From: Orbicella franksi
Taxonomy: Eukaryota
NCBI GenBank assembly: GCA_964199315.1
Contig: OZ116707.1
Location: 22,816,001-22,880,000 of the forward strand
DNA: 64,000 bases
Reading direction: 5' to 3'
Shown: positions 32,401 to 56,400 of the stretch, in pieces
How the letters are laid out: each line of letters opens with the position of its first letter
How positions within the stretch are numbered: position 1 is the stretch's first letter
Notes under the pieces: model-generated
The model's input: the letters and a program-made list of their open reading frames with translations, nothing else
What the model was told of the DNA's origin: nothing
Databases searched by the model: none
Translations under genes and position numbers: made by a program

Positions 32401-35400
32401 CGACATCAGCAGGGGCAGTTAGGTCTGTTTCGATGAGAAGGAAACATTACTACACTTACAATTATAGGTGTCCACTAGTCCTTTTGCCCAGAAGGCATGA
32501 GCTTTACCAGCAATATACAATCAATTCAAGCATTGAAAAAACGTAGCGACCTGGTCATAATTTATGGGGTACGTTTCTGCCGATAATACGAAAAACATTA
32601 ATCGACACAAGTTGCCGGGTCGTCGATCTTTGTGTAGGACTTGGCAAAGCTTTTTATCTATCTTTGAGTAAAGAAAAAATGTTCTTGTGCTAGGTCCTAC
32701 TACACAAACTATAAATATTGGTATTTAACGACAGACGGTTATGAACACTATGGTGTTAACTTTGAAGGCAAGAGCAGAACGGTAGAACCGACCTGTTTGA
32801 CGGCTAGGATCCTCCACATATCCTTTAATGGTATCGGCTATTCGTTTTCCAGTGTTGGCTAACTGATCAGATGGAATGATGTACACATTGGAAGGTTTCG
32901 TTGTGGTGTCTTCTAAATCTTTTTGATCGACACCAGGCTTAACTCCCACTGAGTAGATATTGATGCCCTTGCTCTTGAGTCCTTGGGAAGCTTCACTGAG
33001 AGGTATTTGCTGGGGGTCTTTGGTTTTTGTGTCCAATGATACCAAAACGAGGAACTGTTGGATAGACATTTCACCCAACTTATAATGAACACTGATGCAG
33101 TATTTTAAAAGAAATATAAAACGTCTAAATGACGTTTAGGCGTCATCTTGTCTTCGTTGCGGTTCGGTTCGAATATATATTAGTTTAGGTGTGGAAGAGA
33201 CAAGAAAAAATGACCGATGCAATAATTGCTTTACATATCACAAAAATAAAAAACTATTTACGTTTTGGCCGAGGAAAAGGCTACGTTAAAAGCTAAGTTG
33301 GTGGAGCTAAATTGTGGTTACCACCTACTTATCCATCAAGAGGGTAACGTCAACGTTTCTTAGTTAAGGAAAATTGCACCCTGAGGGCACTACCGAAGTG
33401 ATTGGAGATTGAGAGGTGGTCGTTATTGGAGGGCGCTAAATTGAACCATTACGGTACTGATATCGTTACCTTTGGAACTCCTGGTCTTGAGCCAGCCTCT
33501 GTTGTAAATAACTCTCTCTCAGCCGCTTGCAAGGCTCTGTCTATCCTAGGCGTACCTGACATTGACGGTAATGTGTCTATGAAACTCTTCAATTCATCCT
33601 TGCTGTCTTGTTTACCTTGCAGATCATTGAATTGGAGAGCTGTTCTTGTGTTTTCCCCGTATGTAATAAGAGCCACGTGAACACCACTTGGAGAAATATC
33701 AAGTTCATCAATGATAGACGTTGTAAATGCTGATATCTGCGTCATATTGTCAGGAGTTGTGGCATAGTCCAAAACTAAAGCAACGTCTGCTCCAGTAGAT
33801 GGTGCTAGGGAAAAAAAAACAATTAGGGGCTTAAAAAAACATACATGATTCGCCAGCGGGGACAAAAACTATTATAGTAGACGTTGTAAATGCTGATATC
33901 TGCGTTATATTGTCAGGAGTTGTGGCATAGTCCAAAACTAAAGCAACGTCTGCTCCAGTAGATGGTGCTAGAGAAAAAAAAAACAATTAGGGGCTTAAAA
34001 AAACATACATGATTCGCCAGCGGGGACAAAAACTATTATAGTAGACGTCGTTAAAATTATGGCCTTCTAAACCGAGGTTGTATTGCATTTACACGTAAAA
34101 TAAGATGGCAGTCTATCAGTTCGCGGATGCAACGGAGTTTAGTAGTACTTGTCATCAGTGAACCATTCAATATTATCATTACAGTTATTATCACGGTGTA
34201 ATTCCCAAGAAGTATCAAAAAATCTCTGTTTTGAGGCCACTGTTGTAGCAGTAGAAATATAGTTCCGCAAATTGTAAGGCTTCAGTGCGAGAAAGATCTA
34301 TGACTTTTTCACTGCTGATAGCCTTTTTCATTGCAAGTGTATCTTACCGCATTGAGGCCAACCCTTTCTCTTTGTTCCGGTCAATTCTCTGCCAGTAGCA
34401 TCAACACACCAGCAATAGTCCCATCCAGCACCACACTGAACTTCTTCAAAACGTCCGTCCGGTTTGCACTGTGGAACAAATCTGCCAATATTGTAGTTTT
34501 CCATTGCTTGACGGTACTTTTCCAAGCACAAGCTCTTCGTTGGCTCTACAGGAATAAACATTTCGTAAACAGCTCCCTTTAGAGCATAGCCCTTCCATAG
34601 CCTGTAAGTCTTAGGGAGTTGAAGCTATGACGGTGTTGGAAGATTTATAGCACGTCCAAAATATTACTTGAGGTCCATAACATGCAACGATGACGTCATT
34701 TGACGATGCACCATCTTTGACTTTAAGATTACAATGAAGTGTTGTAAAACCGCCAACAATGCTTTAACGTTTTGAAAGCAACAGGCAATCAACGTTAGAA
34801 GGGGGCCTCAAAAGCCTACTATCCCGGTCTGACCATGATTAAAGCACTTAAGGCTCACTTTTGCTTGAGCCAGCCTCTGTTGTAAATAAGGGGATATTTT
34901 GGCGAATTATCTTCTAGTGAACGAAATGTGGATTTTCTTTTCATTGACGCTCAACCCAGTTCCGTTTGAAAACGCGACTGTGCTTCAGCTGTCAATATTG
35001 GCCATTTGCATTCCCATGCTTACTAGTACTATGTGTCTTCAAACGCAGTTCAATGGTTTTCCTCTTTATTAATAGAATGTAAAGGGCAAAAAATCGACTT
35101 TTCCGCAGGCTCTGTTTTAAGTGTTTTACTTACCATCATCTTTTGGTTTAGGAACAAGACAGTTGGGTGTGTCGGGAAGGGTTGTCTTGGTTCCCGAGAT
35201 CTCGTTACCATCCTTGTCTACACAATAACATACGAAGCCTTGGCACTGAATGTCTTCAAAACTACCATCCTGTGTACATCGTGGAATGAAACTTCCAGGA
35301 GCTCTGTTTTGAAGAGCTCGCTCCCGTTGTTCTTGGCATTTTGTCAGTTGTTCTCCTACAGATTGGAAAATGCCAGATTGTATTCAAAATACATTTTATG

Positions 35401-38400
35401 TGATTGCTTTACTGTAATGCTACATAGTGAACTCAGTGAAAGAAGAGAGCCCGTCTTTTTACTTGGCTAATACCACAAGGTAATGTTTAGTGTAAGCTCT
35501 CATCTGAGAATAGTAGAATAGATTACCAAACATTCTCAATTTGTAAACAATGTAGTTTCATGTTAGCCTTTCCATTGTCCTTCCTAATACCTGTACATTT
35601 GATCATAAAACAACCCTAACCATGCAAAGAATTTAGATACCAAAGGCAAAAAAAAAAAAAAAAACAGCAACAAAAAAAAAAGAAATGGCACACGCATTTG
35701 GTCAGCCTGTATAGCTTCAAACGTAGATTTGCATGTGATTGCTGCGATCTGTTTAAAGTTTATTCCATCTTGGTTAACTTGAGAGTTCCCTTGCTACTAT
35801 TAAAGGTCTGGTGTTATCATAAGCATGAACTCCCAAAATGTTTCTAAGTGTCATGGTTATCTTACCTGGTGCGGGACACGGTCGTTTTTCTCTTCCTCTG
35901 GTACCTGGTATTTCTTGTCCCTGGCTATCTACACACCAACACACGCCACTGGAAACTTGGCACTGTAAAGGTTTGTAGTTACCATCTCTGTCACAGTCTG
36001 GCGAAAAACGCCCAGGTAGAGTTGAACCCGTGTAGCCCTCTGAGCTTATACGCTCCTGTAAGCATGGGGTTAGCCCAGCTTGAAATAGAAAAGAATTAAC
36101 GTAAGAGTAGTCTTAATACAGGAAGTATGGTGGCAATGAGTAAGGATCATCTTTGCTGGATTTAATAATGTTCACGAGAGACACATCACATAGAAACATG
36201 CCGTTAGTAAGGCGCATAATTTATTAGCCAAGCACTTGGGCTCATAGAGATGAGACAAGCTAGTTAAATACCTTAATCTATAAGTACAACTGCTCAAGAT
36301 ACCTTTTCGCTGAACACAACACTACTTTGAGAGGAAGAATCAAATGGGCTAAAACGAGATACCTTTAGGAATGTAGGAAAGTTCAGACATAATAGTGCAA
36401 CCCAAAGCGACCATATTCTCCTGTTATCATGGGGTTAGCCCGTTGTGGCTAGAAAAACCCGGTTTCGTGTATGAAAAATGGTGATATGGACTGGGATTGA
36501 CCTCTGGCAGGATTAATCATTTTCACCAAAATTTTTTCCTCGATTCAGCCCACCTATAATGTTAAAAGCACAATTTCCTATATATATAGGACAAACTACT
36601 TTGAAAGCTAACTCTGTGTGGCGAAGTGAACAAGACAAAATATTGAAAGGATCGTAGAATCAAAACGCCTGCTTGGAACTTTGGAGTACTTAGACATACA
36701 TGTAGCAAACACTCATTTATAAAATACCAAGGTCAGTCTTTACCAGTACGAGGACAACTTGGTTTTCCTTGTGTTTCTGTTCCGAGGATTATCACGTTGT
36801 TATAATAAACACACCAACACGATCCCGTGGCCGCTGAACATTGTACGTCATCGAAGCTACCGTCAGGTTTGCACTGTGGTACATCTCTGTTGACTTTGGT
36901 CTCTTTTCTTCGGAAATTCAGGACGTCATCTCTTCTCTTTTGGCACTCGGTGGGTACCCTGCTCAAAACTGAAATATTGCCAAATTATGTCATTGCTGCT
37001 GTATTTGTAATATGCCTACATAAGATGGGCAACAGCATTAGAACACGTCTTTGCACTTAAACAAATTATGTAGGGCGTAAGAGAAAACTAACTTGCTAAC
37101 TGTTAACTGTGTTTGAAGTTTCATAAATGGACAATTTCTTTTTCATTTCATTCTCCACCTACAACAAGTAAAAAATTACCAAGCCACTGAGTATACCTTC
37201 CTCAGAACAGTTTGGAGCACTGTTGTAAGTGCTGGTGTTCCAATACGCTTGTCCATTCTTGTCAGCACACCAGCATTGTAACCCCCAAGCATAGCTACAT
37301 TGTACTTTCTTGTAATTTCCTTGGCTGTCACAATCTGGCATCGGAAGGTCTGTTATTCCAGATGCAATCAATCTTTCCCTATCATAGTAACAATTTTTCG
37401 GCTCTGCTGCAAGAAATTAAGTTAAATAACTCATTCAGTGTTGAGAATCAGTACGTACCCTGGCATACACGGAGAAAATTTACGGTACAAAACTACAGGA
37501 TACTATATGATAAAGCTATTAGTACAACAACAACAAACTGTACGAACGAGGACATAACTACAATTTCCAAGCGGTTTACTGGTATTACGTGTACAGCTTA
37601 TAACCATTTAAGAATCTGTGTGCATACATCGTCAGCTATACCACATTTATTGCGGCCATGGATCTCATGGGATGAGAACAAGAAGAGTGTAGTTTTGAAC
37701 ATTGCCTTAACAATATTTCTCCATTTCTCCTCTTTTCTTTTTTTACGCTGCGACATGAAAACAGCATCAGACGCAAACCTTTATCGGGGCAGCTGACCAT
37801 TCCCTTCTTTCTCGTTCCAGGAATTTCAAGTCCAAGTGAATCCACACACCAGCAGTAGTTTGTTGCAGAGTAGCATTGCATTTTGTTGTATTTCCCATTG
37901 TCGTCACATTCAGGAGCGAATCGTCCAGGGGACGCACTTCCTAATGGTCCCAAGGCAGTTCTTCGTTCTTTCTGGCATTTGGTCAAGTCAGCTATATAAT
38001 CAAAACACAAAATGCAAATGGGTAAGTATACAATTTAAGTCACGTAGTGACTCCCTCGTCAAACACTATACTTAAGAACAGCCAACCGTTGCAGTTGAGT
38101 TTTATTTTACTTGCTCGTTTGGTCTCGCCGTGGCTATTTTCGCTCGACTAAGTCTTGCCAAAATACGAACCATGGCTCGACTAAACTCGCCTGATATGTC
38201 GCCGAAGCGTACCAAAAAGGCAAGTTTAGGTATCTACCGTACCGTAAGCATATATGTCAGGACAGTAGACACGGCTTCTGATTGGCTAATTTCGAATTTG
38301 GGTACGGAAAACAGGGAAAATGTGTATACCCACCCATCATTCCACAGCTTGGTACACCTGACGTCCTTGTGCCTTGCTTTTCGATTCCACTCTTATCAAC

Positions 38401-41400
38401 ACACCAACACACACCAACGGACGGATAGCACTGAACAACATCGTATTCTCCGTCTGGTTTGCAAGAAGGTACAAACTTTCCGCTGGTTTGTATTCCCTTC
38501 CATCCAAGAGCCGCCTGACGCTCCTTTTGACACATGGTCAGACCGGCTGCGGAGGTACATGAATAAACATTTCATAAACGTAAGCGGAAATTACGACAAA
38601 AAATAAACCTCAAAATTGCTCACCCATTGGCCCACATCTGGGCGTTCCCGATATTCTTGTCCTAGGTATCTCTCTTCCGTACTTGTCAACACACCAGCAG
38701 AATGAAGTACGTGCGAGACATTGAACTGGACTGTAACCTCCATTGACATCGCATCTTAATGTGGACCACCATGGACCACTTGCTCTTACATACTGGCTTG
38801 GTATCTTCATTGAAACCACTGGTTGTAGCCTTTTTATGTCACGGTCTTTTTGACAGGTTGTCTTCACACCTGGACAATATAAACATTTACCACTTTTCAG
38901 TTTGTTTTTTTTTCGCCTTACTTGCATATGAATATGATCCATCTGGCAAACACACAGTGCGCGTTTTCCATTTTTTACCATTGGAAAATACATTCTACCT
39001 GATGTTCACATTTACTACTAAACAGCATGTTTTTTTAATAATTTTGCAAGGAGATATAAATACCTGGTTTTGATTTATCCGGGCACCTAGATTGCGGACT
39101 TCCATAAGTCTTAGTGCCATAAAGTTCATTTCCGTACTTATCAACACACCAACAAATGCCGTTCTCACACTGTACAGGTTTGTACTTCCCATCTTCGGTG
39201 CATTCAGGCTGAAATTGGCCAGATCTACCAGCTGCATAGAGTCTATCACGTTGGCACGCAGTCAAATTGCCTGGAAAAAGCGGATCAAAGTAAAGAACAT
39301 GGCGGAACCAGGTAGTAAGTTGCCCTTCATTGCAGGTATATCTAAGATTCCCAAAATTCTTTTATAAACCCAACGTTCATGGGATATTCCTTTTGTATTC
39401 GTTTTTAAATAATACAAATACTGAACTAAACTCAGTGATTATTGGTGTCAACTGAACTTTAGTTTGTTCAAGGTTAATAGCGACAAACCTGTGTCAGCGC
39501 AGCTTATTTTGTCACTGGAGCGTGTCCTGGGAATAGGTTTGCCATTCTGATCTACACACCAACAGTATTCTCCGGATGGTGCACACTGTGCAAGTTTATA
39601 TTCGCCATCATTTGTACACTGAGGTACAAAAACACCAGCTGGGGCCGTTCCACTCCATGCAAGAGCTGCAAGCCTTTCCTTCTGGCATCTCTTGAGTCCA
39701 GCTGCTCATAGAGACATAAAGAGTGAGTGAAAATGACTGTACGTATCTGAAAAAAATCATATCTTTAAATCATGGGCTGGTAGTTCTAAAACGCCTTTAA
39801 ATAGTATAATTAGACCTCATAATTGATCACCTTCTCCTGGGTTTCCAGTGTAGTGCTCAATCATAAAATCGAAATGGAAAAGTGTAGTCTCTCTTTTAAG
39901 ACCTCTGTTTATGCGAACTCTCAAGTTGTGGTAAAATTAATGTTTTATCTCACTATTCTATTTACGTTCCTAGAATAATAAAGACGTGAATCGAAACTAA
40001 ACAAAACTTCTTGTTATCCCAGAAAGAAGCGGTGATAAGAGGAAAAAAAAAAACTAAATAAAATTCTCTCAACAACTTTACAAAAAGACTCTAACCATCT
40101 GAATCACAGTAAGGTATCCCTGTTGTCTTTGTCCTTGGCAACTCGTTGCCATATCGATCCACACACCAACATTCCCCAAGTGATCCACACTGAACTTTGC
40201 GGTAGCCACCATATCTGTCGCACAGTGGGACGAAGCGAGTGAACTGAAAACGAGTCTGCTGTAATTGTGCACCTTCGCTACTTTCCATTTCGCAGACAGT
40301 TTTCTTTTTGTCTGCAGGGGAAAGAAGAAAAACAATATAAGACTGGATACCAAAGAGGGTTGCAATATTAAGATCATTATAAATTAATAAATTAATAACT
40401 AACCCCACATGAAATATACGTCGGTAAACCATAAAGAATATTAAAACAGAAGACCAATTGATAAATTATTAAAGTAGAGACTTGCTTCAAATGTAACAAT
40501 ATCGCGGATTGATCAGGATAATATAGGATATAGCGTTCTCTGGTAAAAAGTATTTAAAAACATAACCTTTCGACAGCTGGTCTACTGTCTTCGATGGACA
40601 AAAGTTTGTGATAAAATGGAACGTTAAAATTTGAATATAGAGAGTAAATCGCATAAATTTAAAATTACTGCACTTATAAAGAATGTTCAAAAGAATGCTA
40701 AAAGTGCTAAAATAAATGTTTGTTTAAGAAATGTTGTATTGTCTCGGGAGTTTGCATGAAATATTATCAGCCTCAACAGTTTTGTTTCAAATGGGTATCC
40801 TGGAATGGGTTCTTGTTCAAAGTCAATATAGTCCATGCGTTTATTGCTATGTGTGAGTTGGTATTCCATTGACGTAGGGCAGTGTTAGAGGGTGATAAGT
40901 GTTTTATTCCATCGGTAAATTGGAAATATAACGGGCGGACGTTTCACGTACCTAAATCAACACAATTTGGTTGTCCTCTTATTCTGGTTCCCCAGATTTC
41001 ACTTCCTTGGCGGTCTACACACCAACAGTACCCAGTAGATTTTTGACACTGTACAGTTTTGAAACTGCCATCTTGATTGCACTCAGGAGAGAAAACAATT
41101 GCGAAGTCCGCTGACCATGCACTAGCTTGAACTTGGTCCTTTATGCAAGCACTGACGTCATCTTAAATGAAAACGTTATTAAGCAGCTAAGTTACGTGTT
41201 TTTCCACTGTTTAAATATTCAACCAAATCTACGTAATGCAGACTACAGGTGTTACAGATTATCTTTTGAATTTATAAAGAAAAATTGTTGCAAAGAATTA
41301 TTTTTGTGCCAAAACAAACTTCAATGATAAAGCTGAAAGCAACACTTGAAAGGCATGCGCAGTTCAAGTGGACATATAAAAGATCGTAGAGCTGAACTGA

Positions 41401-44400
41401 GGAGAAAGACGCAAAGACATCAATGATCATCGCAGTTAGTTAAACAGCTGACAGGCATCCGCAATTCGATTGAATATATGAAAGATCATATATTTGAATC
41501 ATCGTAGTTGTGTACATAACTGCGATGATCATTCATGTCTTTATATGCGCAATTCACCGGGGTAAGAGAGGTTAAAATAATTATTCATCAAATTAAATTT
41601 CCACTGGCTAAAGGTGATGAACATGGCGGCCATACTCAAGCTAATAGGTCGACGGAGGCATGCAGCCAAGGTTTACAGCGTACATTTTGATATTGAATAT
41701 TCATGTTATAGTCAACTGACACCTGTCAAAACAAGGTATCCGCTGACCAGTATAACATGACTTTATCGCGGGCTCAGGTTTAGAGCTCATTGAGGCCACG
41801 TGATTTCTTGAAGTTGACCGTTGACCAAGATAGGATATTTTATTGAAATAGGAGCTCCGCTTTTACCCTTGGCTGATTCTACATATTAGAGGGAATTTGG
41901 AATTATTTAGAAATTAACCCGCACAGTTGATCAAAGGGAGCTCAGATAGTGTGCTAAACTGACATTTCATTCTAGCAAACAGAACGTTGCGAAGTGTTTG
42001 GTTTTATTGGTAAGAGCAGGCTTGTTGAACTCAGCGGAAAAAGAAAAAAAAGATAATAATTCAACAATTCAATGGAAGCTAAACCCTAGATTTACCTGGT
42101 AAGTTGGAGCAGTCTGGCTTTCCTCGAACTTTGGTACCACTATACACATGGCCGTCCTTGTCACTGCACCAACAGAATCCAGATGAGGGGTGACACTGTA
42201 CTAGTTCATATTTACCGTCCGTTGTACATTCAGGGACGAAGAGTCCGGGCACTGCAATATCATGCCAGCCTAAGGCGAACTGACGTTCACGGAGACAGCG
42301 AGGTAACTTGCCTATTAAAGTGAGCATAACTTTAATAAAAGCAGAAGCTGCTGTAATGACAGTTAAATGGTAGACGGGTCAGAAATTAAACGCTTTCTCA
42401 AGAAGACCGTTACAGCTTATCTCTAGAAGGAAAACTCCAAATTTCGAGTCGTGTTCGCGTAAATCGATCGATGTTCTTCCGGTTAATGCCTAACAAAACA
42501 ATAACAACAATATCAACCTACCGTCTTGGAAACAGAGGGGTGGGCTTCCTCTTTTGCGCGTTCCGCGTATTTCTTTCCCGTTTTTATCAACGCACCAGCA
42601 GTACCCAGTTGAACCATGACATTGAAGTCCTTTGTACTCTCCAGTCCGCTTGCATTCTGGTACGAAACGGCCGGGAGGAGGTACGATGTCGAGACCGTAA
42701 GCCTCAAGACGGTCTTTCAAACAAGGGGTCAGACCAGCTGCCAATTTAAAGAGGCGTTAAAACGTTGTTCGAAGGCTCTAGGTAGTAGGCTTTATTGTCT
42801 GTTATACACTCAATGATAAACACAGCATCCGGAGCGGGGAACTCGTTTATTGACACAGGATACAGTGAGCGTTACATCATCATAAAGAAAATATAGCGGT
42901 GAGTAGACAGAAAAAAATAACAGGCAAAATTGACAGAGATGCCTTCGAGTGGCTCTTGTATAAGTTACAAAATCTTAAATTGCCTTCCAGGCCCATAGGG
43001 ACACGAATCATACATAATGAACATACTCCAGTGTAATTAGCAAAACGATAAAAAACTTGACTTAAAAAACTCAAGATAGCACGAGTTTAGTTAATTTAGG
43101 CTTCATGTGTCTGACTTCATATCCAAAGGCAATGCTTTTGTTGTCAAGAAGCCACTTGTTCCATTGTAATCATGCACCAATAACAACAAAAAACAAGAAC
43201 ATCAGTAACAACAACAACAACAACAACTACGAAAATAACGAGAACACCAGAACAGTTTGTATCTTACCGGTATGATCACACAGGGGCCTGCCGCCTTTCC
43301 TTGTTCCCCGCCACTCTTTGCCATTCTGGTCAACACACCAGCAGTATCCAGTTGAAGGGTGACATTGGACATTCTCATATGAATTATCCTTTGAACACGT
43401 CGGGATATAGCTGCCAAATGGGCGCACTCCTTGGGAGAGATCCATTCTCTTTCTCTGACACAGAGTTAACTTGGAATCTGCTGTTCACAAAGAAATATGA
43501 TATGAAATAAAGTACATAAACTGGCTTGGTTTGTTTGATTGTTTGTTTTTGCCATTTATAGATAAATTTACAAAATATCAATCTGTAATTAAGGTATGGA
43601 AGCCCAGGGAAGCCTATAACGCATACGTAAAGGACAACCAAAAAGATACCTGTGGGTTAACAAAAGAATAAAAAAGCTGTCATCGGCACACAAAATGATC
43701 ATAATTTAGCATAAAACAAGCTGCGCAAAAGACAACAACAAAAAAAGGGGAAAAAAGCACACACAAGCACACCAAGAGAAGTAAAATACACTTATACCAA
43801 AAACGGTTACTTAAGTTTAGAGATGAACTCAGCAATACTAGAGGCATTTTGAATTTCGGTCCAGAGAGATATAAATAATTTGGGGCCTTGAAAGCAGCAT
43901 GCGAATTTCTTTACATTTGTCCTACAGTATGGCAATCGAAAGTAGTTCTTAGTTCTGGTATTTATGTGCGTCACAGTTAATTAAAAACATTGGAACTTTC
44001 AGGAACAATGTAAAATGAAACCTGGACTACTAACCAGTATCATTGCAGTCTGGAGTTCCGCCCGTCTGCCTTGTACCGTAAAGCTCATTGCCGTACTTGT
44101 CCACACACCAGCATTGTCCCAGGGCATCATGACACTGAACTGGTTGATAACCTCCATCGTCACTACACTTTGGTATGTATTCGCCATTTGAAGGCAGAAC
44201 ATTTAATGCCAGTGATCGGGCTCTGTCCAGCAGGCAGCGAGTTGGTTTATTTCCTTCGAGAAATTCGTCGTCTGTGGACGGTCATATCAGAAAAGAACAA
44301 AAATGTATTTCATGATTATATTACAAGGAACCCAATCTTCTAGTAATAGCCCACTCTACTAAAAACCAGAGGCACCTATGGTTTACGTACGCTTGCATCG

Positions 44401-47400
44401 GTGGCAGAAGCCCCTTACTACAAGGATTCGAGGGAAAGCTCGCAGTGTGTACATTCGTCATGTGCACGACAATATAATTTTATTATAAACTATGTTGACG
44501 TCTTCTTATGTTGATGTTTTCACGTAATTTTGTGTCTTTTCAAGCAAAGTTAAGTGAAGAGTCCATTTACTCTGTTAAAAACAACACAGTTGCCAAAATT
44601 AGGTCGTTAAATAATTAAATGAACCTTTGGAACGGTCTCACAATTGACTTAGGGCTCAGATATCCCAACAAATACCTAGAATACCCCTTTTTCCTACCTG
44701 GGCATGAAACAGGTTTTCCTTTTTCATTTCGCGTTCCAAGTATTTCTTTTCCGTTTTTATCTACACACCAGCACGGGCCTTCTAACCGTAAGCACTGGAC
44801 AGGACTGTAAGACCCGTCAGGTTTACATTCAGGCACAAAGACGCCCTCCTTTGGTTTGTTGTCCCAACCTAGAGCGCGGCGCCGCTCTTTTTGACACATC
44901 GACGGTGGTGCTGCAAGCGAAAAATCAAGGTCTAACATTATTCGGAAGCTCTGTTTTGTTGAAAGGACATGGAGGTACATGTATAGTGTTATCATGTTTG
45001 TTAACAAGTAAACGATGATTAGCCTGCTTTTGGTCGGTGTTTTGGGAACAAAACAAACATTATATAGTATATAGTCATGTTTTACAGCTATAAAGGCACA
45101 TTCGGTTTTAGCCTTCCCTATATTTGATGTTTACAACATTTAGTTGCATTTACGGGCTATAAATAGAACAACCAAGAGCTGTCCAAATCACTACCTGTTC
45201 TGGAGTGTGCAAGGTGTTCCGACTCCCATCAGCAAGAAATGACCTTAAATAGTCTCGTTAAGCCTTATCTAGACTGGCCAGAGAGTACGCAAGAGCAGCA
45301 ATAGCAAGCAAGCCATTATAAAATCGTTTCTTACCAGTTTTGGGGACACATGATGCTTTTCCTGAGACCCGCGTTCCTACTAATTCTTTCCCATCACTGT
45401 CTACGCACCAACATGTTTCGTTACGAACCCCAAACTCAAGACACTGCATTTCTTCATATGATCCATCGACTTTGCAGCGTGGTTTAAAACGTCCTTTTAT
45501 AACCTGGTTGGTATATCCCAGAGCCCTTCGCAGCTCTTTTAGGCACGGTGATAGATTCGCTGGTGATATAAAAAGAGAATGCCAATGTAATAGGTGCCTA
45601 GTCAGTAATAGTCAGTCAGTCAGTCAGTCAGTCAGTCAGTCAATCAAACAATCAATCAGTAAGACNNNNNNNNNNNNNNNNNNNNNNNNNNNNNNNNNNN
45701 NNNNNNNNNNNNNNNNNNNNNNNNNNNNNNNNNNNNNNNNNNNNNNNNNNNNNNNNNNNNNNNNNNNNNNNNNNNNNNNNNNNNNNNNNNNNNNNNNNNN
45801 NNNNNNNNNNNNNNNNNNNNNNNNNNNNNNNNNNNNNNNNNNNNNNNNNTTTATTTATAGAGGGTAAAAGTGCAGTGAATATTTACGTCCAGTAAACATC
45901 TTAAGTTAAAAAAAACCTCGTTATTATACATTTTCACTTTTAATTTTCTTTTACCTGGCAGTATATAATAAAAAAACTATGGTCCCGTTGTGATCCGTGG
46001 AAAGTTATATGTCATAACATTTTGACAAATATTTATGTTTTAGGATCACAAAGCACTTCTTCCTTTTTTCCAAAGAATTTTAGAAAAACTCGTGAAAGTT
46101 CGGGAGACGTTTAACATTTATTTCACGTTCACGCAACAATGTCCACGTTTTCGAAAATACTCCACCATTAACATAACGATACTTCATCTTTCTCACTCGA
46201 AACAGTGCAAAGTCATGGAAGAGATTCCTACCTGGTGCATCACAGTATTGCTTGTTTCCCCTGACGCGTGTCCCTGGCTCCTCATCGCCCATCTTGTTTA
46301 CACACCAGCATTCTCCAACTGAGCTGTCACACTGCATTCTTTCATATCCACCAGCTGGATTACAACTTGGAATAAAGGTTTTGCTATTTCCATTCTGTTC
46401 CTGAGCTGTGCTCGCTAACTGCCGTTCTTTGATACATTTAGTTGGACCTGAATATGATATGGTAAAGTTGTGGTTTGCATCTTTGTTTTTCTAAAGTAAG
46501 TTAATATGCACAAGCAAGTTCACTTCACTACAAGGGGTGGTGGAGGCGTGGTAGGAGCCCCCTTGGATTCTAGTTCTAATAATACATATCAAAACAACTT
46601 CGGATTTAGTAGTTAGCCCTCAGTTTGTGGTTCTGGGTCTTCATGACGTTATCTCATAACACATGACGTCATTTAACATCTGTCATTTTGGATTTCATGA
46701 TTAGCAGATAAAAAAACGCTTGCAAGCCAACACGACTAAACAAGGCTAAAATAGCAGTAGGTGCAGGGCTTAGGGCGCCCGGACGCAAATCCTGGACGAG
46801 ACATCATAAGTTGGTCAAGTTTGTTGCTGGTTCTCGTCCCTGCTCCCAGGATTTAATTTCTCCGGGTTGTCCGGTTTTCTCCGCAAAACCAACACAATAG
46901 CCACTCCGTGGAGGTGATAATATTGATCAGTTTTACCCATCTTACTTTGAGGGTGTTTTGACGCCAGAGAAGGTAAATTCCCAGAGTCCGTTTTATACAT
47001 GTACCTACCCTTCTTAATACAGTTAGGAGTTCCTCTTGTAGTTGTAGTCCAAATCATAAAGCCATCCTTTGTGACGCACCAACATAGTCCGGTGCTGCCT
47101 GAGCATTGCTCTGTTCTAAAGCTTCCATTCTGCGCACAATCAGGAATGAACACTCCAGGTGGAACAAGGAAACCAGGTAGGTTGAGAACGCGGCTTCTCC
47201 AACGTTGACACGTGCTTAGTTTAGCTTGGTCGACAGGACAAACACGGTAAATACTTCATTTAGTCATCACATATTTCACTACTCTGACCTACCACACACA
47301 CACCACTGCACTGCACTGTAATGCACTACATTACCTCATATTACTTTTTCCCACGCTACATGCATGCTGGGCTTCCGTTACACTACAGTAAGATATATTA

Positions 47401-50400
47401 CACTACACGGCACTGCACTAAAATTGCTCTGCTCTGCTCTGTGATGCACTGCTTTATAATACTATGTGACGTTTTTAATAGTGCCCAGGTCAGTGTAAGA
47501 TGCGTGAAACTCTTGGAATTATGCTCATCAAAACGCTATTGCTTGACAATCGGGTTTTTAAATTAGTATAAGGAACTCATCTACTGTTTTGTAAAACAAA
47601 GCCCGATGCCATTGACTCTACCTGGTGCTTTGGAGCAATCGAGACTTAAGCCTTTCAACTTCATTGTTCCTGGAAGCTCGTATCCGTGACTGTCTACGCA
47701 CCAGCAATGAGTGGTGTTACACTGCAAAGGCTTGTAAAGACCATCGTCACCACAGGCTGGTTCATAGGGTCGGTCAGACGGGCCTCTCCAGCCGAGGTGC
47801 CGTTGACGTTCTTTCTGACACGGCGATTTGGTCACTGTTGATCAAAATTGATGCCGAAACAAAATAATTACGTTTTCTTTTTCTGAATCTTTGTCTATTA
47901 ATTAAATTATGCAGCACGGAGTGACCTAAAGTTGAGTGATTAAAAAAAGTAATAAAAATAAGCTGTCACCTGGAGAGAAAATGCAAACTGAAAACGTATT
48001 TCTCAAGGTTGTTCGAAGTTTAAAGCAATGGATTTGGAGCCACACATTAGGAGCTTTGCGAATTGTTGATATTCATCAAATAGTGTGGTGGCTTATGCGA
48101 ATTGGTGACTGCCCTAATCAGCCATATGCTTGTTAAATCTATTAAACAATAATGGGGTTCAGACAAAGTAAGTAATAAATAATAAAATCTTTATTTATCC
48201 CGATAAAAAACCGATCAGCTGAACCTAAGGGAGCAGCTAGTATAAACTGGTGATCAGCAATATAAAATACGTAAGTAATGATTGAATGACGACGACAGTT
48301 TACCTGAAGGTCTACATATGGCTCGTCCTCTGGTACGAGTTCTTGGGATCTCATATCCTCCTGCATCCACACACCAGCAGAATCCGGATGATTCGTGACA
48401 CTGTGTGCTTCTATATTCTCCATCCGTCTCGCACTCTGGTACAAAGACTCCAGGAGCTGGTCTTCCACTCCATCCCAAGTTCTGTTGTCGTTCCTTTTGG
48501 CACTTTGTTAGTCCAGCTGTAGCACATAACACATATCAATACTGCTTTCTATGTTACTTAACTGGACTGCGAACAGCGTCTCTTTAATTTAGCCAATAAA
48601 ACTATTTTTGGGACGTTAATGCCGGTGATATCTCCACAGTTGTACCATCGATTTTTTCCCTATCGTTTATAGCTAAATTAACACAGACAACCTCATATCA
48701 GTACATATTGTAGCCACTATCCGTAACTTCTCAATAACCCACAAATTACAAAGGCCATGAGGTTATCTCGGTACGCAGAGCTAGTGGTACCAAATGACAA
48801 TGCCGAATCGTTCATCCTGTATTTTGATTCACATAGCACTAACATCAATTATTACTTTATGTCAAGCTTGGTTCAAGGTACCTTATAGATTATTTCTTAC
48901 ATCTACGTGTACTTGTAGATCTCTGGTGGAGTACCTTAGTTTCAATGGGAGTTCAAGGGTTTCAAGTAAGTCAGTAGTACTTTTAAATGTTTTTTTTTAT
49001 TGTTACCTGTTACGTCGCATTGGGGCCTCCCTTTGCTGTAAACGTCTCTAGTCCTCGGAATTTCTCTTCCCAGTCTATCTACACACCAGCAACTGCCAAT
49101 TGCTTGATTGCACTGCTCGGGGATGTAACTACCAGCTTTATCACAGGCTGGGACCCATGCATTAGCAGCATCAGCATCATTTTCACATTTCGTCTTGCCA
49201 ACTAACAAGAAAGGTTACAGATCAGGAATTATGTCTATAATTTGCCATATAGTATAAATATATGTTGTCACGACAAGCAAGCCTTTAAAAACACTGATGA
49301 AAAGACACAAGCAGAAAGAAAGACAAACAGAAAGTGTACTCTTGACAGTTTATCCAAGAAGACGGGCGACAAGTTACAAGTTGCCTATGTTTGCTAAGAA
49401 CAGCTTTCTCGGAAAGAATCATTTCTTGACATCTAGGTCCTGTCTATCTAACGCTTGGCACAAAACTGAGCTATCGTAGTATGTAGCAACTGTGACAAGA
49501 GGAAAAAATGTCACTCTGATCCTACTTTTTATTAGAGTGAACAGTTGAAACTATTAAAAGTAGACTTAATTTCGATTAATGGACATTGAAATGAAAGATG
49601 GCGGGTATTGCTGAGATCAAATTAAAGTTGTCATCTCCCTCCCAATTGATACATATTTCATTAATACAAACCTTGAGTTCTACAAGAACGTCTTCCGTTT
49701 GCTCGAGTCCCCACAAGTTCATTGCCATTCTTGTCAACGCACCAGCACTGGCCAGTGGATTTATCACACTGCTCGGGGGCATAGCTACCATCTGGTCGAC
49801 ATTCTGGCATAAAAATTGCCGCTGTTTTGCCATTGATTTGCCAACCACGAGCACGTAGTAAGTCCCTCTCACAACGTGTCCCATTTCTGGCATCTAAATT
49901 AGAAAAGGAAGGGCATTGAGCAACTGTTAATTTGCTTTATGTTTAAAGTGAGATCGAGTGACAATTAAAGACATGAGATCGTTATTATCCTAGTCTTATC
50001 CCACCTCCCCCCGCCCGACGCGAGAAGAAGAAATTACTATAATGATAAGATTATAACACTTGCCCCAAAGTGGGGAAAATATCGCACGCCAACATATCGG
50101 TTAGAAACGTTTCCAACAATAATTCTTAATAACTTTCAATTTCTAGCTACTAGTATCTGGGATTAGAAAAAAGACGTTTACTGTGAGGGCAGCTTTAGGT
50201 GATAACAAAACAAGAGATTTCTTGTGATTCTCATCGTACTAACTCACATTGCTTGTCCCCATTAAATAGCAAATAAACTGATATGAAAACAGTTAAATAC
50301 CTTTATCACATGTTGGTTTCCCACGGGTGCGGGTGCGTGGCAGTTCCCTTCCGGCCTCGTCAACACACCAGCAGTATCCAGTAGACGGATGGCATTGTCT

Positions 50401-53400
50401 CTGGTTAAAACCAGCATCAGGATTGCACTGTGGAACATATACTCCAACAGTTGCCACGGTAAGCGCGCCTAGAGCTTGTTTGCGAGCCCGTGCACAAGGT
50501 GCACGGCCAACTAGGTGAGGATACACTTTGCTGCCTGGTGCTGCAGGTGGGGAAGGTCTTTGTCCTAGAAATGAGAGGACAATATTGGTATTTAAATGAT
50601 GCCACGGTGAATACTCTTCAAAACGAAGTGCAGGTCATCCATTTTACGTCGAGCAAGGGCGATGTGAATAAAAAGGAAAGGTGAAAATACAATTGGTATT
50701 GATACAATTGGAAGTTGACATACCAAACTTAGCACACTCTGCTGCTTGGCGAACACCCGCTGATCCTGCCAATACATAACCATCATAATCATCAACACAG
50801 AAGCAAACAGAGCTGAAACGGTGACATTGAAGTGACTTGTAATGACCATCATCACTTCGACATTTTGGAACAAAGGCTCCGGATGGGGGTAAACTGGAAT
50901 AACCAGTCAACTGGTGAAGATGTTTTTGACACGTGGTCAACTTTTCTGCAAAAAAGAAAAGGAAACCGATTAAGCGAAATAAAGGGTCCGGCTATTGTGA
51001 GACTACCAAAAATAGTCTATTATACTGCTGTACTACCATGTGATGCGACCTAACCAGCTATGGTAAGCGAGGATCGTCATGCAGGTAAAACATAGTGGTC
51101 TTTACCTATCTGACACCCTTAATGAAGTTGAAAATATTTTATGTAGACATACCTTTTGAACTCAAACGTAGCCTTTAAGAGTGATGTTGCTAGCTCCCGT
51201 CTCTAGTTCTCGTTGTAATGATGTTTATGGATGACTTGGTATGCAAAACCTCGATCGGGTGGTTGCTATTTGGGTACATCTACAGTTATTCTTCAAACGG
51301 ATACGTTTGCTTGCCCACGAGACAGATGGAGTGTAATTTTCTTTACCAGTCATGAGATTGGTTTCGAGTAAAATGAAAAAGAGAATTAAGAAATTAATCA
51401 TTTACCCGGTGCTTTGCAGTCAGCTTGGCCCCTTACTGTTGTGCCTGGTATAGGATTTCCATTTTCATCTGAGCACCAACAGTAGCCATATCTGTAGTCA
51501 CACTGCACGGGTTTGTAGTCTCCATTCTCATTGCACTCAGGAATAAACTGTGTAAAGTAGCCAGCATCTTGAACCTGATTAACAACGCACGCAGGCGCAG
51601 AATCTACAAGAACACAACGCAGTTGTTTAATAGGAGGCTTACCTGCTTTCATTATTGTGTTAAGCCCTTAATAGAGTCTGTTTAACATTCATTGTTGATA
51701 ATATTTTCTTGCATGTTTCTTCTGGCGTTTCGTTTTGTCAAATAAACTTTAAAGTTAATCTAACTTGTGCATTATCATGAGAAAACTTGAGTAAAAAAAA
51801 CATCTCTACCTGGTTTTGGGCATCTGATAGGGCCAGGAGATCTGGTTTGTAGGATCTCTGTTCCATTTGCATCAACACACCAACACTCATCGTTCTGTAC
51901 ACCACATTGTATGTCAAGGTACCGTCCAATAGAACTGCAACGAGGCAGATACTTGCCGAGGCTCGGTGGAGAGGAAAAGAAATCTACCTGCTGCTGTTGA
52001 CAAGGTGTGAGTGGTTGTTCTGCAAAGTCAGGTTGCGAAAATCGGCAATTAAAATGATACTTTTTGCCAAAAGGAAGATGACTTATTAGAGTATTTTCAA
52101 TAAAACAACCTTCTAACAGATGTTTTGTCTCTGTAATTATTCAAGAGTTCGGTACACCTCTAGAATACAGACAACTCTATATAGCGGGCAGTGCAATTCA
52201 CAATTTCTTCCTCTATAATAGAGAGGGTGGTAAAGGCGGGGGAGGGGGGGTTTAAGATCACGTTTCACGAAAAATAAATTGGTCCTTTCACAATTCACGG
52301 GAAATAAATTCGTCATTTCACGTTTTATGAAAAAAAATGACATTTTTTGACACGAACTTACGTAACTTATGATCTTTGAAAAGTTACGCCCAAAGTACAG
52401 CCTTGTTAGATGTTTTTATCATTCGCCCGCTTCTTCTTCTGCGCGCAGCAAAAATGGGATTATTGTCTTGTCGTGATCACGCAATATTGTTATTGTTGAC
52501 CACAAATTTAATACTTTTTCCTCATTTCAAAAAGAATAATTTTGAAAAATCACGGTTCACGGCTTCTAATGAATCACGATTCACGAGGGAAAAAACAAGC
52601 CATTTCACATTTCACGAGAAAAAAATTAGGCTATTCACGAATCACGAAAATACCCTTTACCACCCTCAATAGACACACCTTCATAATACGGACACTCTAT
52701 TTTGCCCCATTGTTTCGAGTATTATAAAGGCAGTGAACAACATTTTCTCTCTTACCACTATCTGGACAATCGGCGCCTATTATGCTACTTGCCACGGAAA
52801 GCCACATGATGCTACCAGGTCTCCTGTTTCCATTTTGATCTACGCAGAAGCAATATGGTCCACGGCACTGTATATTATCAAAGGAACCATCTGGTTTGCA
52901 TCGTGGAACATACCGGCCCATGGCTGGATACCTCCAGTACTCCTGGTACTGCCGCTGGCATAAAGTAAGGTTCTTACCTAAGGGAATGATTTTTATGAAA
53001 TGAAGTACAGCTTTATACGAAGTTAAGTAATCGGGTCGGTTAAGGTTCATCTAAGATTTGTAACCATGTTGTGCCTCTACACCTAGCAGCTGCATTTGAT
53101 CTAGGATAGTAAGGACATTGTCAATTTGGGTAACGGAATTCATCCATAGTATGGAGGGATTTGTATTTCTGTATTTTGTAGGGTTTCTGAAAAGAAACTT
53201 TTCAATACAAAAAGTCTGACAATTCTCTCTGACAACAAAGTTTTCGCCGATTGATTGCAATTTTATTAAGGAAGTAATCGACAAAAAAAAAAATCGTTGT
53301 TTTTTGGTTTGGTGTCGTTTGACTGTAGCGTTGTCTTTGTCTGTCGTTGTTAGAGTAGCACAGAAGCGAATTTTCGGCCGGTGTGGTTTTCAATGCGTGT

Positions 53401-56400
53401 CGAGAGGTAGAAATTTGGTCGAGTTGCAACAGGCACGGGGGCGTTGTTAAATCTAGACACTGACTGGTTAGTGGAAGCCCCTTAATAATCTAGGCACCAT
53501 TCCTACAGCACACGATGCACCTGTTAAATATCAATTACGTTTCAGTTAATTCCCGTTGGTCATACCTGGGGTAGCACAGTTGGGTGATCCTTCTCCAATA
53601 CTCACTCTTGTTCCGGGCAGTTCGTTACCTCTCCTGTCCACACAGTAACAGACTGATCCACGGCATTGAACATCATCATAACTCCCATCGGGTTTGCAAC
53701 GAGGAACAAATGTTCCTGGTGCTGCGTTGTTCGTTTGCTGGCGATGCTGATACTGGCACACCGTGGGCTGTAGGTCTAGAAAAGGAAATGATACTTTTTG
53801 TTTCAGTTTATGTTTATGGCAAATGAAATTTACTTGGTGAAATATTAGTTCCATTAATCACGGAAAGAAAAAGCGAGTTTTGACAGTCAGTTCCAGGTTG
53901 TCTTCAGTAAACATTGAATTGAGCCTGACTGGCCGGTCGGTTAGGAGTGTTCGTGAAACAATTAAGTATACCATCCATAAGATTTGCAACTTTTAAGTAA
54001 TGACATTTACCTGCTGTTGTGCAGTTTGGTTTAACAGGAAGCTCTGTTCGAGATTGTGCGATCTCATCTCCTCTCTCATTGACGCAGAAGCAGGCAGTTC
54101 CTTGGCATTGTATATCTTCGTAGGATCCCTCTGGAGTACAGAGAGGTTTGTAACGTCCTTGCAAATATTCTTGTTGACATCGTGTTAGATCAGTGCCTGT
54201 TTCAAATCGTACGGAGGACAAGCAAAATTTAGTCAAACGTTCATTGTAATCCAGTGGCCCTGTCAAAATCGCTGAGGTAATTTCTTTATGCACTTACCCA
54301 TTCCTGGACAGCTAACGAATTCCTGTGATCTTGTACCGCGTTGTTCCACCCCAAGGCTGTTAACACACCAACATTCTCCGGTATACTCTGAACACTGCAC
54401 ATCTTCATAGCTACCATCGTCTTTGCAGCGCGGCACAAAGCGGTCCTGACGATAAGGGGTTTTAAGAGCCTTTTCTACTTCTAGCTGACATGCCTTTGGA
54501 TCTGGTGCAACTAAAATGTCAACATGTCAATTATTGTACCAGTGCAATCTACCATTAGGGACATTAGCTTTCTAATTTGCAGACATAAATGGAAAGATAT
54601 TTCACCTGGAAATTGATCTTTTGGTGGAGCAAGAGCCGCCTTTTTGACGGCCCTCTTCAGCGGATTAACAGCATCCTGAGGAAAAACAGCCTTTGGGTCA
54701 CTTGCAATAGCCTTGAGTTCATTTGGGTCAAAGTTCTTTCCCATACCAACTGGAATAATCTCCACACCTTTCGCGATAAGACCAGCAACAGCATTAGGTA
54801 AGGGAATTTGTTTGTCGTCCTTTGTTTGGGCACTTCCAACAAATACTACCAGAACCTGTCCAAACAAGCAATACAGGTAGAACGATTAAAAAACCTGCCA
54901 GTTAGTACAGACACAAAGACTAAAAATGTGATCGATATTTTACAAGAAGCCTTGATGTGCTAGTTCCAAACGCTCGCGGTCGCCTTGTCATTTTTATCGA
55001 TGATTAACTGGGGTCGGGAAGGAGTGCATATACCCATACCAATAGGGAATAACTCTGATCATTAAAGTCAGGTAATTTTCATCTTCACTAAGGAACTTAG
55101 GAACACGAGTGTGCAACACTTGTGTTTTCATTAGATTTGATTTAGTTCCTCAATTCCAAATTAACATAGTACAAACAGAAACATAACGTACCCGATAACT
55201 CTTGCTTTTTCGATCAAATGAGTAGTAATTAATGCCTGAATGAAGCTGCTTGCCATTACAACTTAATTAACCAGAGGTAAGGTTTTCTATTCCTTTTCTT
55301 ACCTTGGAGACATCAATACTTCCCCCTTTGGGGCTAAACAAATCAGAATCCACTGTTTGCAATCCCTGGCCAAGTCTTGCGGCACCCTGGTCATGAGGAG
55401 TTCTGTCAAGTAATTGTTTGACTGCCTCAGGTGTACGATTTCGTCCATCAAGAGGATTGTTGAAAGTGAAAAGAACTCTACTGTTTGGGCTGTAGGTTGC
55501 GGCGCCAACACGGGCAAGCCCGTCGCTGATGTTAAAGGTGTCAGCAATTTGTTTTGCAATTTCAATTTGGGCAAGAAAATCTGGGTGACTGATCTGTCCT
55601 GAGCCATCGAAAACGAAGCCAAGTTCTACTGGTACACTGGTGGTATCTCCTGAAAGAGACAAGTAAACCCAAAGTAGGTTAAACGCAATACTTGTGCAGC
55701 TACAAACGGCAAAATAACATGGATGATTTAACTCAGTTGTATAAAGCCGGAAATGCATAAGGTATGCATGCTCTTTATACGGAGAATCGCAAAAACAGAG
55801 CCTGATAAATTCATTCAGGATACTTGGAATTAAAGGAATGATGGTGGTGGGAATGTCATTAACAGACGTGTGTTATACCTGGTTTGTCGCAATTTGGAGC
55901 TCCAGGTTGTCTTGTGTTCGTGATTTCCTTTCCATTTGCATCAACACACCAACACATTGGCCCACCACTTTGGCACTGTGTATTATTGTAACTTCCATCT
56001 GGTTTGCACTGAGGAACATAGGCACCTAGTGGAGCATTGCCTGTTGGGCCGAGAACCTGTTGCCTATGTGCTTGGCATGGCGTGTACCAAACTAGAGGGA
56101 TTGTGGCAAAGCAAAATAATTAAATGTTATTAATTTGTTACTCTTAGTTAATTGATTAGGCCCATATGATAAGAGAACACCCGGAGATCATGAAGATCGC
56201 GTTTAACAGTTCATAGCGTGTAACTGACTTCCAGGAACAGGTTCTTAATAAACGTAAATCCAAGAAGTAATGCGAATAGACTGGCCTACTATTACTGTGT
56301 CGGAGTTAAACTACAGAATCCGACCTTTTCTCTAGGTTAAGCGGGACTTGAAGGAGAAACAACGGAAGATGTTACATCATAAGTTTATTAGCTTACCCGG

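Follow-up and report, generated by a model that had tools for sequence, protein, structure and literature searches.

We analysed a 64,000-nt window of the genome of the coral Orbicella franksi (OZ116707.1:22,816,001-22,880,000, assembly GCA_964199315.1; positions below are 1-based within the window). Its minus strand carries a large part of a gene that codes for long series of thyroglobulin type-1 (TY) domains alternating with VWA domains. We name D01-D49 the TY exons that lie in the window, and U1-U7 those that lie past its upper edge. The subject of this work is the run D11-D42 (54510/54501-34348), which consists of 32 consecutive exons that each encode one TY domain (PF00086). A motif scan of the window detects 49 TY cores; the interval 54510-34348 contains 32 of these, and all the domains of the single-exon array that had been predicted from the sequence are where they were claimed to be. 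The coordinates of the features are collected in Table 1.

The 32 exons are built on the same plan. All have phase 1-1; the AG acceptor precedes the first cysteine (Cys1) by 3-6 codons, the GT donor follows the sixth (Cys6) by 1-9 codons (usually 3-4), and the exon lengths (186-246 nt) are all divisible by three. They are separated by introns of 77-934 nt (median 426). Joined, the exons make 6,846 nt, which translate into 2,281 amino acids without any stop, in agreement with the original prediction that no copy contains a stop or a frameshift. The spliced run contains 192 cysteines, exactly six in each of the 32 domains, and the linkers from Cys6 to the next Cys1 have 7-14 residues, mostly 8-9. 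The start of D11 is ambiguous, with two in-frame acceptors at 54510 (where the pyrimidine tract is better) and 54501. The five run exons that were sampled all match PF00086 (Thyroglobulin_1), with E values of 1e-12 to 1e-20 and 47-73.5 bits for a cut-off of 20.6. The mean pairwise identity of the 32 domains is 38% (range 20-56%), and the only invariant columns of their alignment are the six Cys, one Pro and the Gln of the QC motif; the core is CWC in 26 domains, CFC in three and CYC in three. By the profile, by the six-Cys/QC/C-W/F/Y-C-V motif and, for the one domain that was modelled (D11), by the fold, these are thyroglobulin type-1 domains of type 1A. A six-frame scan of the whole genome gives 116 TY matches, all above the cut-off, most of which belong to this gene and to its neighbour.

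The run is joined in phase 1 to VWA domains, one upstream and five downstream. Past the upper edge of the window, another seven TY exons and additional VWA domains lie on the same strand, as well as a head with the order WAP-Kazal-Ig-Kunitz-WAP-WAP-VWA, and the gene contains at least 56 TY domains in total. A gene model of the sea anemone Actinostola unites Kunitz, VWA and TY domains.

The assembly gap that interrupts the sequence of the run falls inside the intron between exons 46447-46232 (D24) and 45559-45335 (D25). Four RNA runs were compared with the locus: X1, which consists of coral metatranscriptome contigs, X24 (46 reads), and X22 and X23 (2 reads each). A 442-nt contig of X1 (depth 317) joins 45559 directly to 46232, in frame; therefore, in that transcript no exon is hidden in the gap and the frame is continuous. 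With VWA domains as its borders on both sides, the run is indeed unbroken, as had been proposed. RNA also confirms another eight of the predicted junctions, which lie between 43268 and 49201 (CT..AC on the plus strand, which is GT..AG on the minus strand); this makes nine in all. Across the tested stretch, the RNA depth is 200-340 in the exons versus 10-60 in the introns (a difference of about 10x), and the variants in X1 are 33 in introns versus 7 in exons, four of the latter being synonymous and three not.

That every exon is frame-neutral, as the original prediction had it, makes the gene a conceivable generator of isoforms: regulated skipping of the phase 1-1 exons would yield many shorter proteins, and the full-length array would rarely be the functional product. 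Fish genes with multiple TY domains are annotated with many isoforms of different lengths. However, exon skipping, which the prediction had suggested to look for, was not seen: consecutive exons only are joined over the nine exons covered in the four RNA runs, where the depth of raw reads is low and contigs drop rare forms. Moreover, every domain is individually under purifying selection, as described below. We consider this explanation very improbable.

Two other features of the X24 reads should be mentioned. Four of them join the CWC cores of D28 and D27 (43343/44126), with 12 foreign letters in between and GT..GC ends; they probably come from a paralog or a chimera, and not from a splicing event. 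At 48178-48238, the reads cover only a 60-bp intronic piece that has a loose end on either side and differs at two fixed positions; it is probably a repeat transcribed elsewhere.

The age of the array was deduced from comparisons both within the gene and between species. Synonymous sites are saturated in all pairs of paralogous domains (mean proportion of synonymous differences, pS, 0.79), the proportion of nonsynonymous differences (pN) being 0.32-0.46 for the closest pairs; the comparison of pS and pN gives no sign of recent duplication or homogenisation among these TY domains. Similar TY arrays are present at two loci of Nematostella (L001 and L002) and at one locus of Actinostola. When the lists of domains are aligned by dynamic programming, coral U1-U7 and D01-D27 match all 34 domains of Nematostella L001 without any gap (34/34), and coral U1-D16 match all 23 domains of Actinostola, also without any gap (23/23). 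Many reciprocal best pairs are found in both alignments, and the collinear one-to-one orthology of the domains holds with the orthogroup of the Nematostella locus DS469592.1:319644-347815. The first 17 domains of the run (D11-D27) are kept in place in this sea anemone.

Regarding corals, a search with exon D35 returned seven database relatives, 67-95% identical over the full length of the query, and three coral loci (L013-L015) were fetched. The orthologs that they contain carry D16, D19 or D22 through D42 in identical order (27, 24 and 22 collinear domains), and a VWA domain follows the ortholog of D42 in all three. The 164 domains of five loci were placed in one tree, where 38 of the 49 array positions are monophyletic by position, not by species. 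These comparisons indicate that the TY array is ancient and positionally fixed, and that it predates the split between corals and sea anemones, which bears out the earlier description of the array as old.

A few local departures from this regularity were observed. The closest coral relative has an extra partial copy of D33 (39 amino acids; L014:8500-8616) just upstream of the full D33, which is the sole difference in copy number that we saw. Between the two Nematostella paralogs, the domains orthologous to D13 share 94% identity (L001:21067-21273 and L002:18388-18594), their neighbours being far more diverged, which suggests local gene conversion. A VWA domain lies between D10 and D11 in the coral (54606-55872) and in Actinostola (L003:59822-61154); it is absent from Nematostella L001 (18205-18450), where the intron is only 245 bp long. 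A 452-residue protein (P0043) considered as the next Actinostola gene was rejected, since it comes from an unrelated metagenome contig.

Since dS is saturated between paralogs, the ratio of nonsynonymous to synonymous substitution rates (dN/dS) is uninformative for them, and orthologs were compared instead. For the three coral orthologs, the values of dS are 0.17, 0.93 and about 1.7, and those of dN/dS 0.15, 0.11 and 0.09, respectively. Considered one by one, D16-D42 have values of dN/dS between 0.04 and 0.34 throughout, where both rates are estimable (dN is zero in two comparisons with the closest coral and dS is saturated in four with the most distant one). The purifying selection that had been proposed is thus found in each of these domains. 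In the first loop dN/dS is 0.23, 0.15 and 0.15 for the three orthologs, and in the loop between Cys3 and Cys4 it is 0.23, 0.18 and 0.19; the remaining segments have values of 0.09-0.17, and the cysteines about 0. Between the coral and Nematostella, the first loops are 43% identical in orthologs versus 26% in non-orthologs, and the second loops 39% versus 20% (p<=2e-4 in both cases, none of 5,000 permutations having reached the observed value). From these values of dN/dS and from the identity of the loops of orthologs, it follows that the constraint on the loops acts position by position. The orthologs that were retrieved keep the "DAGYF" loop of D16, the "LPGF.VPPGVF" loop of D23 and the long insertion of D35.

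The original prediction had described the first loops as widely variable and diversified, and the ones it quoted are present in the run (ALGWKGIQTSG in D36, AYGLDIVPPPG in D29, HLGWRGPSD in D22 and DAGYFTQ in D16). The strong difference between positions stands; diversification in the sense of selection does not, since there is no pooled sign of diversifying selection and the loops are conserved at each position. The pooled level argues against a fast-evolving repertoire of loops. Nor is the divergence of the loops at the neutral level, an outcome that would have spoken against the prediction. As judged from the alignments, the loops differ between positions and are fixed within a position, and neutral drift is rejected.

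What the domains do may be approached from their fold. The profile of the 32 domains matches the p41 fragment (1ICF) with an E value of 4e-19. One domain, D11, was modelled with AlphaFold; the model has a mean predicted local distance difference test score (pLDDT) of 89.8 and consists of a helix (residues 3-13) and strands. It superposes on chain I of 1ICF, the p41 fragment bound to cathepsin L, with template modelling (TM) scores of 0.84/0.86 and a root-mean-square deviation (rmsd) of 1.7 Å, and on the TY domains of saxiphilin with TM scores of 0.84-0.87; for p41 and saxiphilin together, the rmsd is 1.2-1.7 Å and the sequence identity 33-34%. IGFBP (TM 0.67-0.76, 20-25% identity) and EpCAM/Trop2 superpose less well on the model. 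The p41 fragment contacts the active site of the protease via an arrangement of three loops (PMC7863939, section 2.4), as the original prediction had stated for thyropins in general, and confirmed inhibitors with TY domains include equistatin, saxiphilin and the salmon egg inhibitor (PMC7863939). The TY-repeat proteins of Nematostella are found in the mesoglea, enriched in adults and listed among protease inhibitors (PMC12549020), and a peptide with a loop of the D23 type has been detected in the proteome of Actinia fragacea (PMC11857728). The idea of a polyvalent inhibitor is favoured by the presence of Kunitz, Kazal and WAP exons on the strand of the TY exons and by the listing of the Nematostella TY-repeat proteins among mesoglea inhibitors.

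We propose that the 32 exons form the central block of a giant secreted matrix protein and encode a fixed panel of matrix-anchored inhibitors, an explanation whose chances of being right and wrong we consider to be balanced. From 5' to 3', the protein would consist of a WAP-follistatin/Kazal-Ig-Kunitz-WAP-WAP head, alternating blocks of VWA and TY domains, the domain encoded by a WAP exon, and, as its tail, units of VWA and Kazal domains. The TY block would have arisen by tandem duplication of exons before corals and sea anemones split, and would have been frozen since, without gain, loss, shuffling or homogenisation in the spans that were compared. Each TY domain would be a module similar to p41 or equistatin, which binds one preferred partner through its three loops; the most plausible partner would be the active-site cleft of papain-like cysteine proteases, and some of the domains might target aspartic or metallo-proteases. 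The VWA domains may tether the chain in the mesoglea or in another matrix, and serine proteases would be left to the Kunitz, Kazal and WAP domains. Such a protein would act as a hard-wired panel of inhibitors, tight-binding but reversible, and would buffer proteolysis by the coral's own enzymes as well as by foreign ones. That each of the 32 TY domains (at least 56 in the gene) is a dedicated binder of a different protease or ligand, in a panel fixed since before the divergence of corals and anemones, is a more doubtful claim, which we regard as possible, if rather unlikely.

Tandem clusters of cathepsin-L-like genes (Peptidase_C1) exist in the coral genome (G000:C13:18978449-19057005 and G000:C12:12179282-12515416); some of the exon matches in them hold stops, and all the cathepsin-like genes of this genome are multi-exon. 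The products of these clusters could be targets of the TY domains.

Several points weigh against the proposal of an inhibitor panel. To our knowledge, no sequence rule tells inhibitory from non-inhibitory TY domains. We infer the inhibition of proteases from the fold and from the company of the domains in the gene, and likewise the secretion and the matrix location of the protein in the coral. The grouping of the head, the VWA blocks and the TY run into one transcript is suggested by strand, by phase and by one automatic anemone gene model, not by coral RNA. The Nematostella locus ends at the ortholog of D27 and that of Actinostola at D16, so that the conservation of D28-D42 covers corals only. 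The catalogued Nematostella TY-repeat proteins are probable, not certain, relatives of the coral gene. Only a few TY proteins are proven inhibitors, and nidogen, IGFBPs, Trop2 and thyroglobulin, like most TY proteins, have no demonstrated inhibitory role (PMC7863939). Last, a fixed number of domains and uniform linkers (7-14 residues, mostly 8-9) fit a length-constrained structural rod equally well.

Such a rod or ruler is a serious rival, although we consider it unlikely. The array would be a disulfide-stiffened spacer of fixed length between VWA adhesion blocks, comparable to the rod of nidogen or to the EGF arrays of fibrillin; the conservation of the loops would reflect the packing of neighbouring domains or contacts with matrix partners, not the binding of proteases. 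The number and order of the domains are exactly kept in all the species compared, the linkers are short as well as uniform, and the Nematostella TY-repeat proteins, which are probably related, are core matrisome glycoproteins of the mesoglea (PMC12549020); the scarcity of proven inhibitors among TY proteins points in the same direction (PMC7863939). However, a spacer needs a fold and a length, not 32 different loops each held at a dN/dS of 0.15-0.23. In addition, the nearest structural matches are the inhibitory domains of p41 and saxiphilin, and the chain also bears Kunitz, Kazal and WAP modules.

The composition of the head raises another possibility, namely that the TY domains and the WFIKKN-like head form a scaffold where growth factors or peptide hormones are bound and stored within the matrix, with each position tuned to a ligand of its own. 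WFIKKN binds GDF8/11, and the TY domains of IGFBP bind IGF. In the head, WAP, follistatin/Kazal, Ig and Kunitz succeed one another as in WFIKKN, the best Swiss-Prot match of the Nematostella protein NvThyr-1 is WFIKKN2, and the C-terminal domains of IGFBPs are TY folds, which are matched both by the profile and by the model of D11. On the other hand, the matches with IGFBP (see above) are weaker than those with p41 and saxiphilin, and neither an NTR domain nor a second Kunitz domain was found where WFIKKN has them. We consider a sequestering scaffold quite unlikely. The resemblance is limited to the head: WFIKKN1/2 have no TY domains, and the order of the coral gene continues with WAP, WAP and VWA instead of the second Kunitz and NTR domains, so that we do not assign the gene to the WFIKKN family.

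The proposal of an inhibitor panel is best compared with what is known of other TY proteins. The activities of equistatin towards cysteine proteases and towards cathepsin D map to different domains. Like the coral protein, equistatin from Actinia equina is a cnidarian chain with tandem six-Cys TY domains, but it is a small soluble inhibitor with three of them, and has no VWA, Kunitz, Kazal or WAP domain, whereas the coral gene has 32 in the run and at least 56 in total; this comparison is based on descriptions. Equistatin acts as an inhibitor of both papain-like cysteine proteases and cathepsin D (PMC11857728, PMC7863939), and it is the best Swiss-Prot match of NvThyr-2 and NvThyr-3 of Nematostella (PMC12549020). 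The p41 fragment (1ICF) and the TY domains of saxiphilin share the fold and the CWCV/QC signature of the coral run; they are single or double domains in unrelated proteins and their inhibition was measured, whereas the coral array is known from its sequence and a model. The thyroglobulin repeat proteins of Nematostella are, like the predicted coral product, cnidarian proteins with TY repeats and VWA; they belong to the matrisome, are present in the mesoglea proteome and enriched in adults, and the best match of NvThyr-1, WFIKKN2, fits the coral head. Of the Nematostella loci, both L001 and L002 show collinearity with the coral gene. The study in question catalogues these proteins only, without the size of the array, the exon structure, the collinearity or the selection (PMC12549020).

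Vertebrates also have secreted proteins with long TY arrays: thyroglobulin has about 10-11 TY domains, nidogen-2 of fish and rays 12-15, and teleost "thyroglobulin-like" proteins up to 26 matched stretches, as in XP_062311043 of Osmerus eperlanus (26 in 1,858 amino acids, versus 32 in the coral run). The fish isoforms fit with modular exons. A profile search was made in 1.84 billion representative proteins; none of the best 150 has more than 26 matched stretches, and neither the full-length coral protein nor a close ortholog is among these 150 (the best match is 68% identical over 44 amino acids). The ENA proteins P0004 and P0008, which have 17-24 TY domains, were considered as relatives and rejected; they are membrane proteins whose repeats are near-identical and recent. 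Long VWA arrays occur together with a Kunitz domain in collagen VI alpha-3, which has no TY domains, and no collagen helix was found in the coral gene. In the literature on coral skeletal matrices, TY domains are mentioned only in octocoral agrin-like proteins, not in the coral protein studied here. Proteins with multiple TY domains and thyropins are therefore already known, and probable Nematostella relatives have been catalogued, not analysed. What is new is the size of the run, the construction of one exon per domain, and the conservation of the number, order and loop identity of the domains (D16-D42 in corals, U1-D27 in anemones).

TY domains are small, stable binding modules whose rules of specificity are poorly known. 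In this gene, one scaffold exists in 32 natural variants, all of them nearly unchanged across the species compared, which makes it a ready test set for relating loop sequence to target. A matrix-anchored chain with four kinds of inhibitor-type domains could control the remodelling of coral tissue, the spill-over of digestion, or, at the tissue surface, the proteases of microbes and symbionts. Were the panel of dedicated binders real, no polyvalent inhibitor of greater size would be known, and the panel would provide a natural catalogue of the specificities of TY loops. If the array is a rod, it is a well-dated and more ordinary example of length constraint in a matrix protein. It is also a long array of tandem domains that has escaped concerted evolution and changes in copy number over deep time, whereas recently amplified TY arrays behave in the opposite way.

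Table 1. Position of the TY run and of the surrounding features in the window.
Feature	Position	Strand	Remarks
D11, first TY exon of run	54298..54510	-	orthologs in Nematostella (66% identity) and Actinostola; alternative in-frame acceptor 54501
D12 TY exon, short, CFCV type	54011..54196	-	
D13 TY exon, CYCV type	53566..53775	-	64% identity to Nematostella
D14 TY exon	52756..52977	-	
D15 TY exon	51810..52019	-	
D16 TY exon, "DAGYF" loop	51406..51603	-	loop also in Nematostella, Actinostola and coral L015
D17 TY exon	50724..50945	-	
D18 TY exon	50301..50510	-	
D19 TY exon	49672..49893	-	
D20 TY exon	49007..49201	-	RNA confirms 3' junction
D21 TY exon	48304..48516	-	RNA confirms both junctions
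D22 TY exon	47622..47834	-	RNA confirms both junctions
D23 TY exon	47009..47224	-	RNA-confirmed; loop type matches Actinia proteome peptide
D24 TY exon, upstream of gap intron	46232..46447	-	RNA-confirmed
Assembly gap (N) in D24/D25 intron, beside (GACT)n microsatellite	45666..45849		
D25 TY exon, downstream of gap intron	45335..45559	-	RNA-confirmed
D26 TY exon	44698..44910	-	RNA-confirmed
D27 TY exon	44035..44271	-	RNA-confirmed
D28 TY exon	43268..43480	-	RNA-confirmed
D29 TY exon	42522..42737	-	
D30 TY exon	42096..42311	-	
D31 TY exon	40952..41161	-	
D32 TY exon	40096..40311	-	
D33 TY exon	39489..39704	-	
D34 TY exon	39064..39270	-	
D35 TY exon, longest, 33-residue first loop with insertion	38624..38869	-	insertion kept in three fetched coral orthologs
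D36 TY exon	38334..38546	-	
D37 TY exon	37779..37991	-	
D38 TY exon, most divergent, CWCA	37197..37406	-	
D39 TY exon	36744..36968	-	
D40 TY exon	35866..36078	-	
D41 TY exon, CYCV type	35134..35355	-	
D42, last TY exon of run	34348..34545	-	
Two-exon VWA domain bordering run upstream, phase-1 donor at ~54606	54606..55872	-	Pfam
Five two-exon VWA domains bordering run downstream, first acceptor phase 1	26889..33868	-	
D01-D10 (ten TY exons) and two VWA domains, same gene, upstream of run	55879..63717	-	
D43-D49 (seven TY exons), same gene	22455..26525	-	
WAP exon (20620-20997), then repeated VWA / follistatin-Kazal units	739..20997	-	

A second gene with 26 TY domains (G000:C10:22930298-22965968, plus strand; loci L007-L011) lies about 35-50 kb away, on the opposite strand and in divergent orientation. 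Its first 17 domains are roughly collinear with U1-D10. Nematostella likewise has two TY arrays on one scaffold (L001 and L002).

Two repeats were observed in the downstream part of the gene. At 33760-34060, the acceptor region and the beginning of the first downstream VWA exon occur as two tandem copies (about 130 bp), of which the upstream one is in the intron between D42 and the VWA domain. Between 739 and 10400, units of VWA / VWA / follistatin-Kazal repeat every ~4.58 kb, with some exons identical (for example, 1262-1777 = 5839-6354 and 1918-2157 = 6495-6734); in contrast with the old TY run, these units are either very recent duplicates or an artefact of the assembly.

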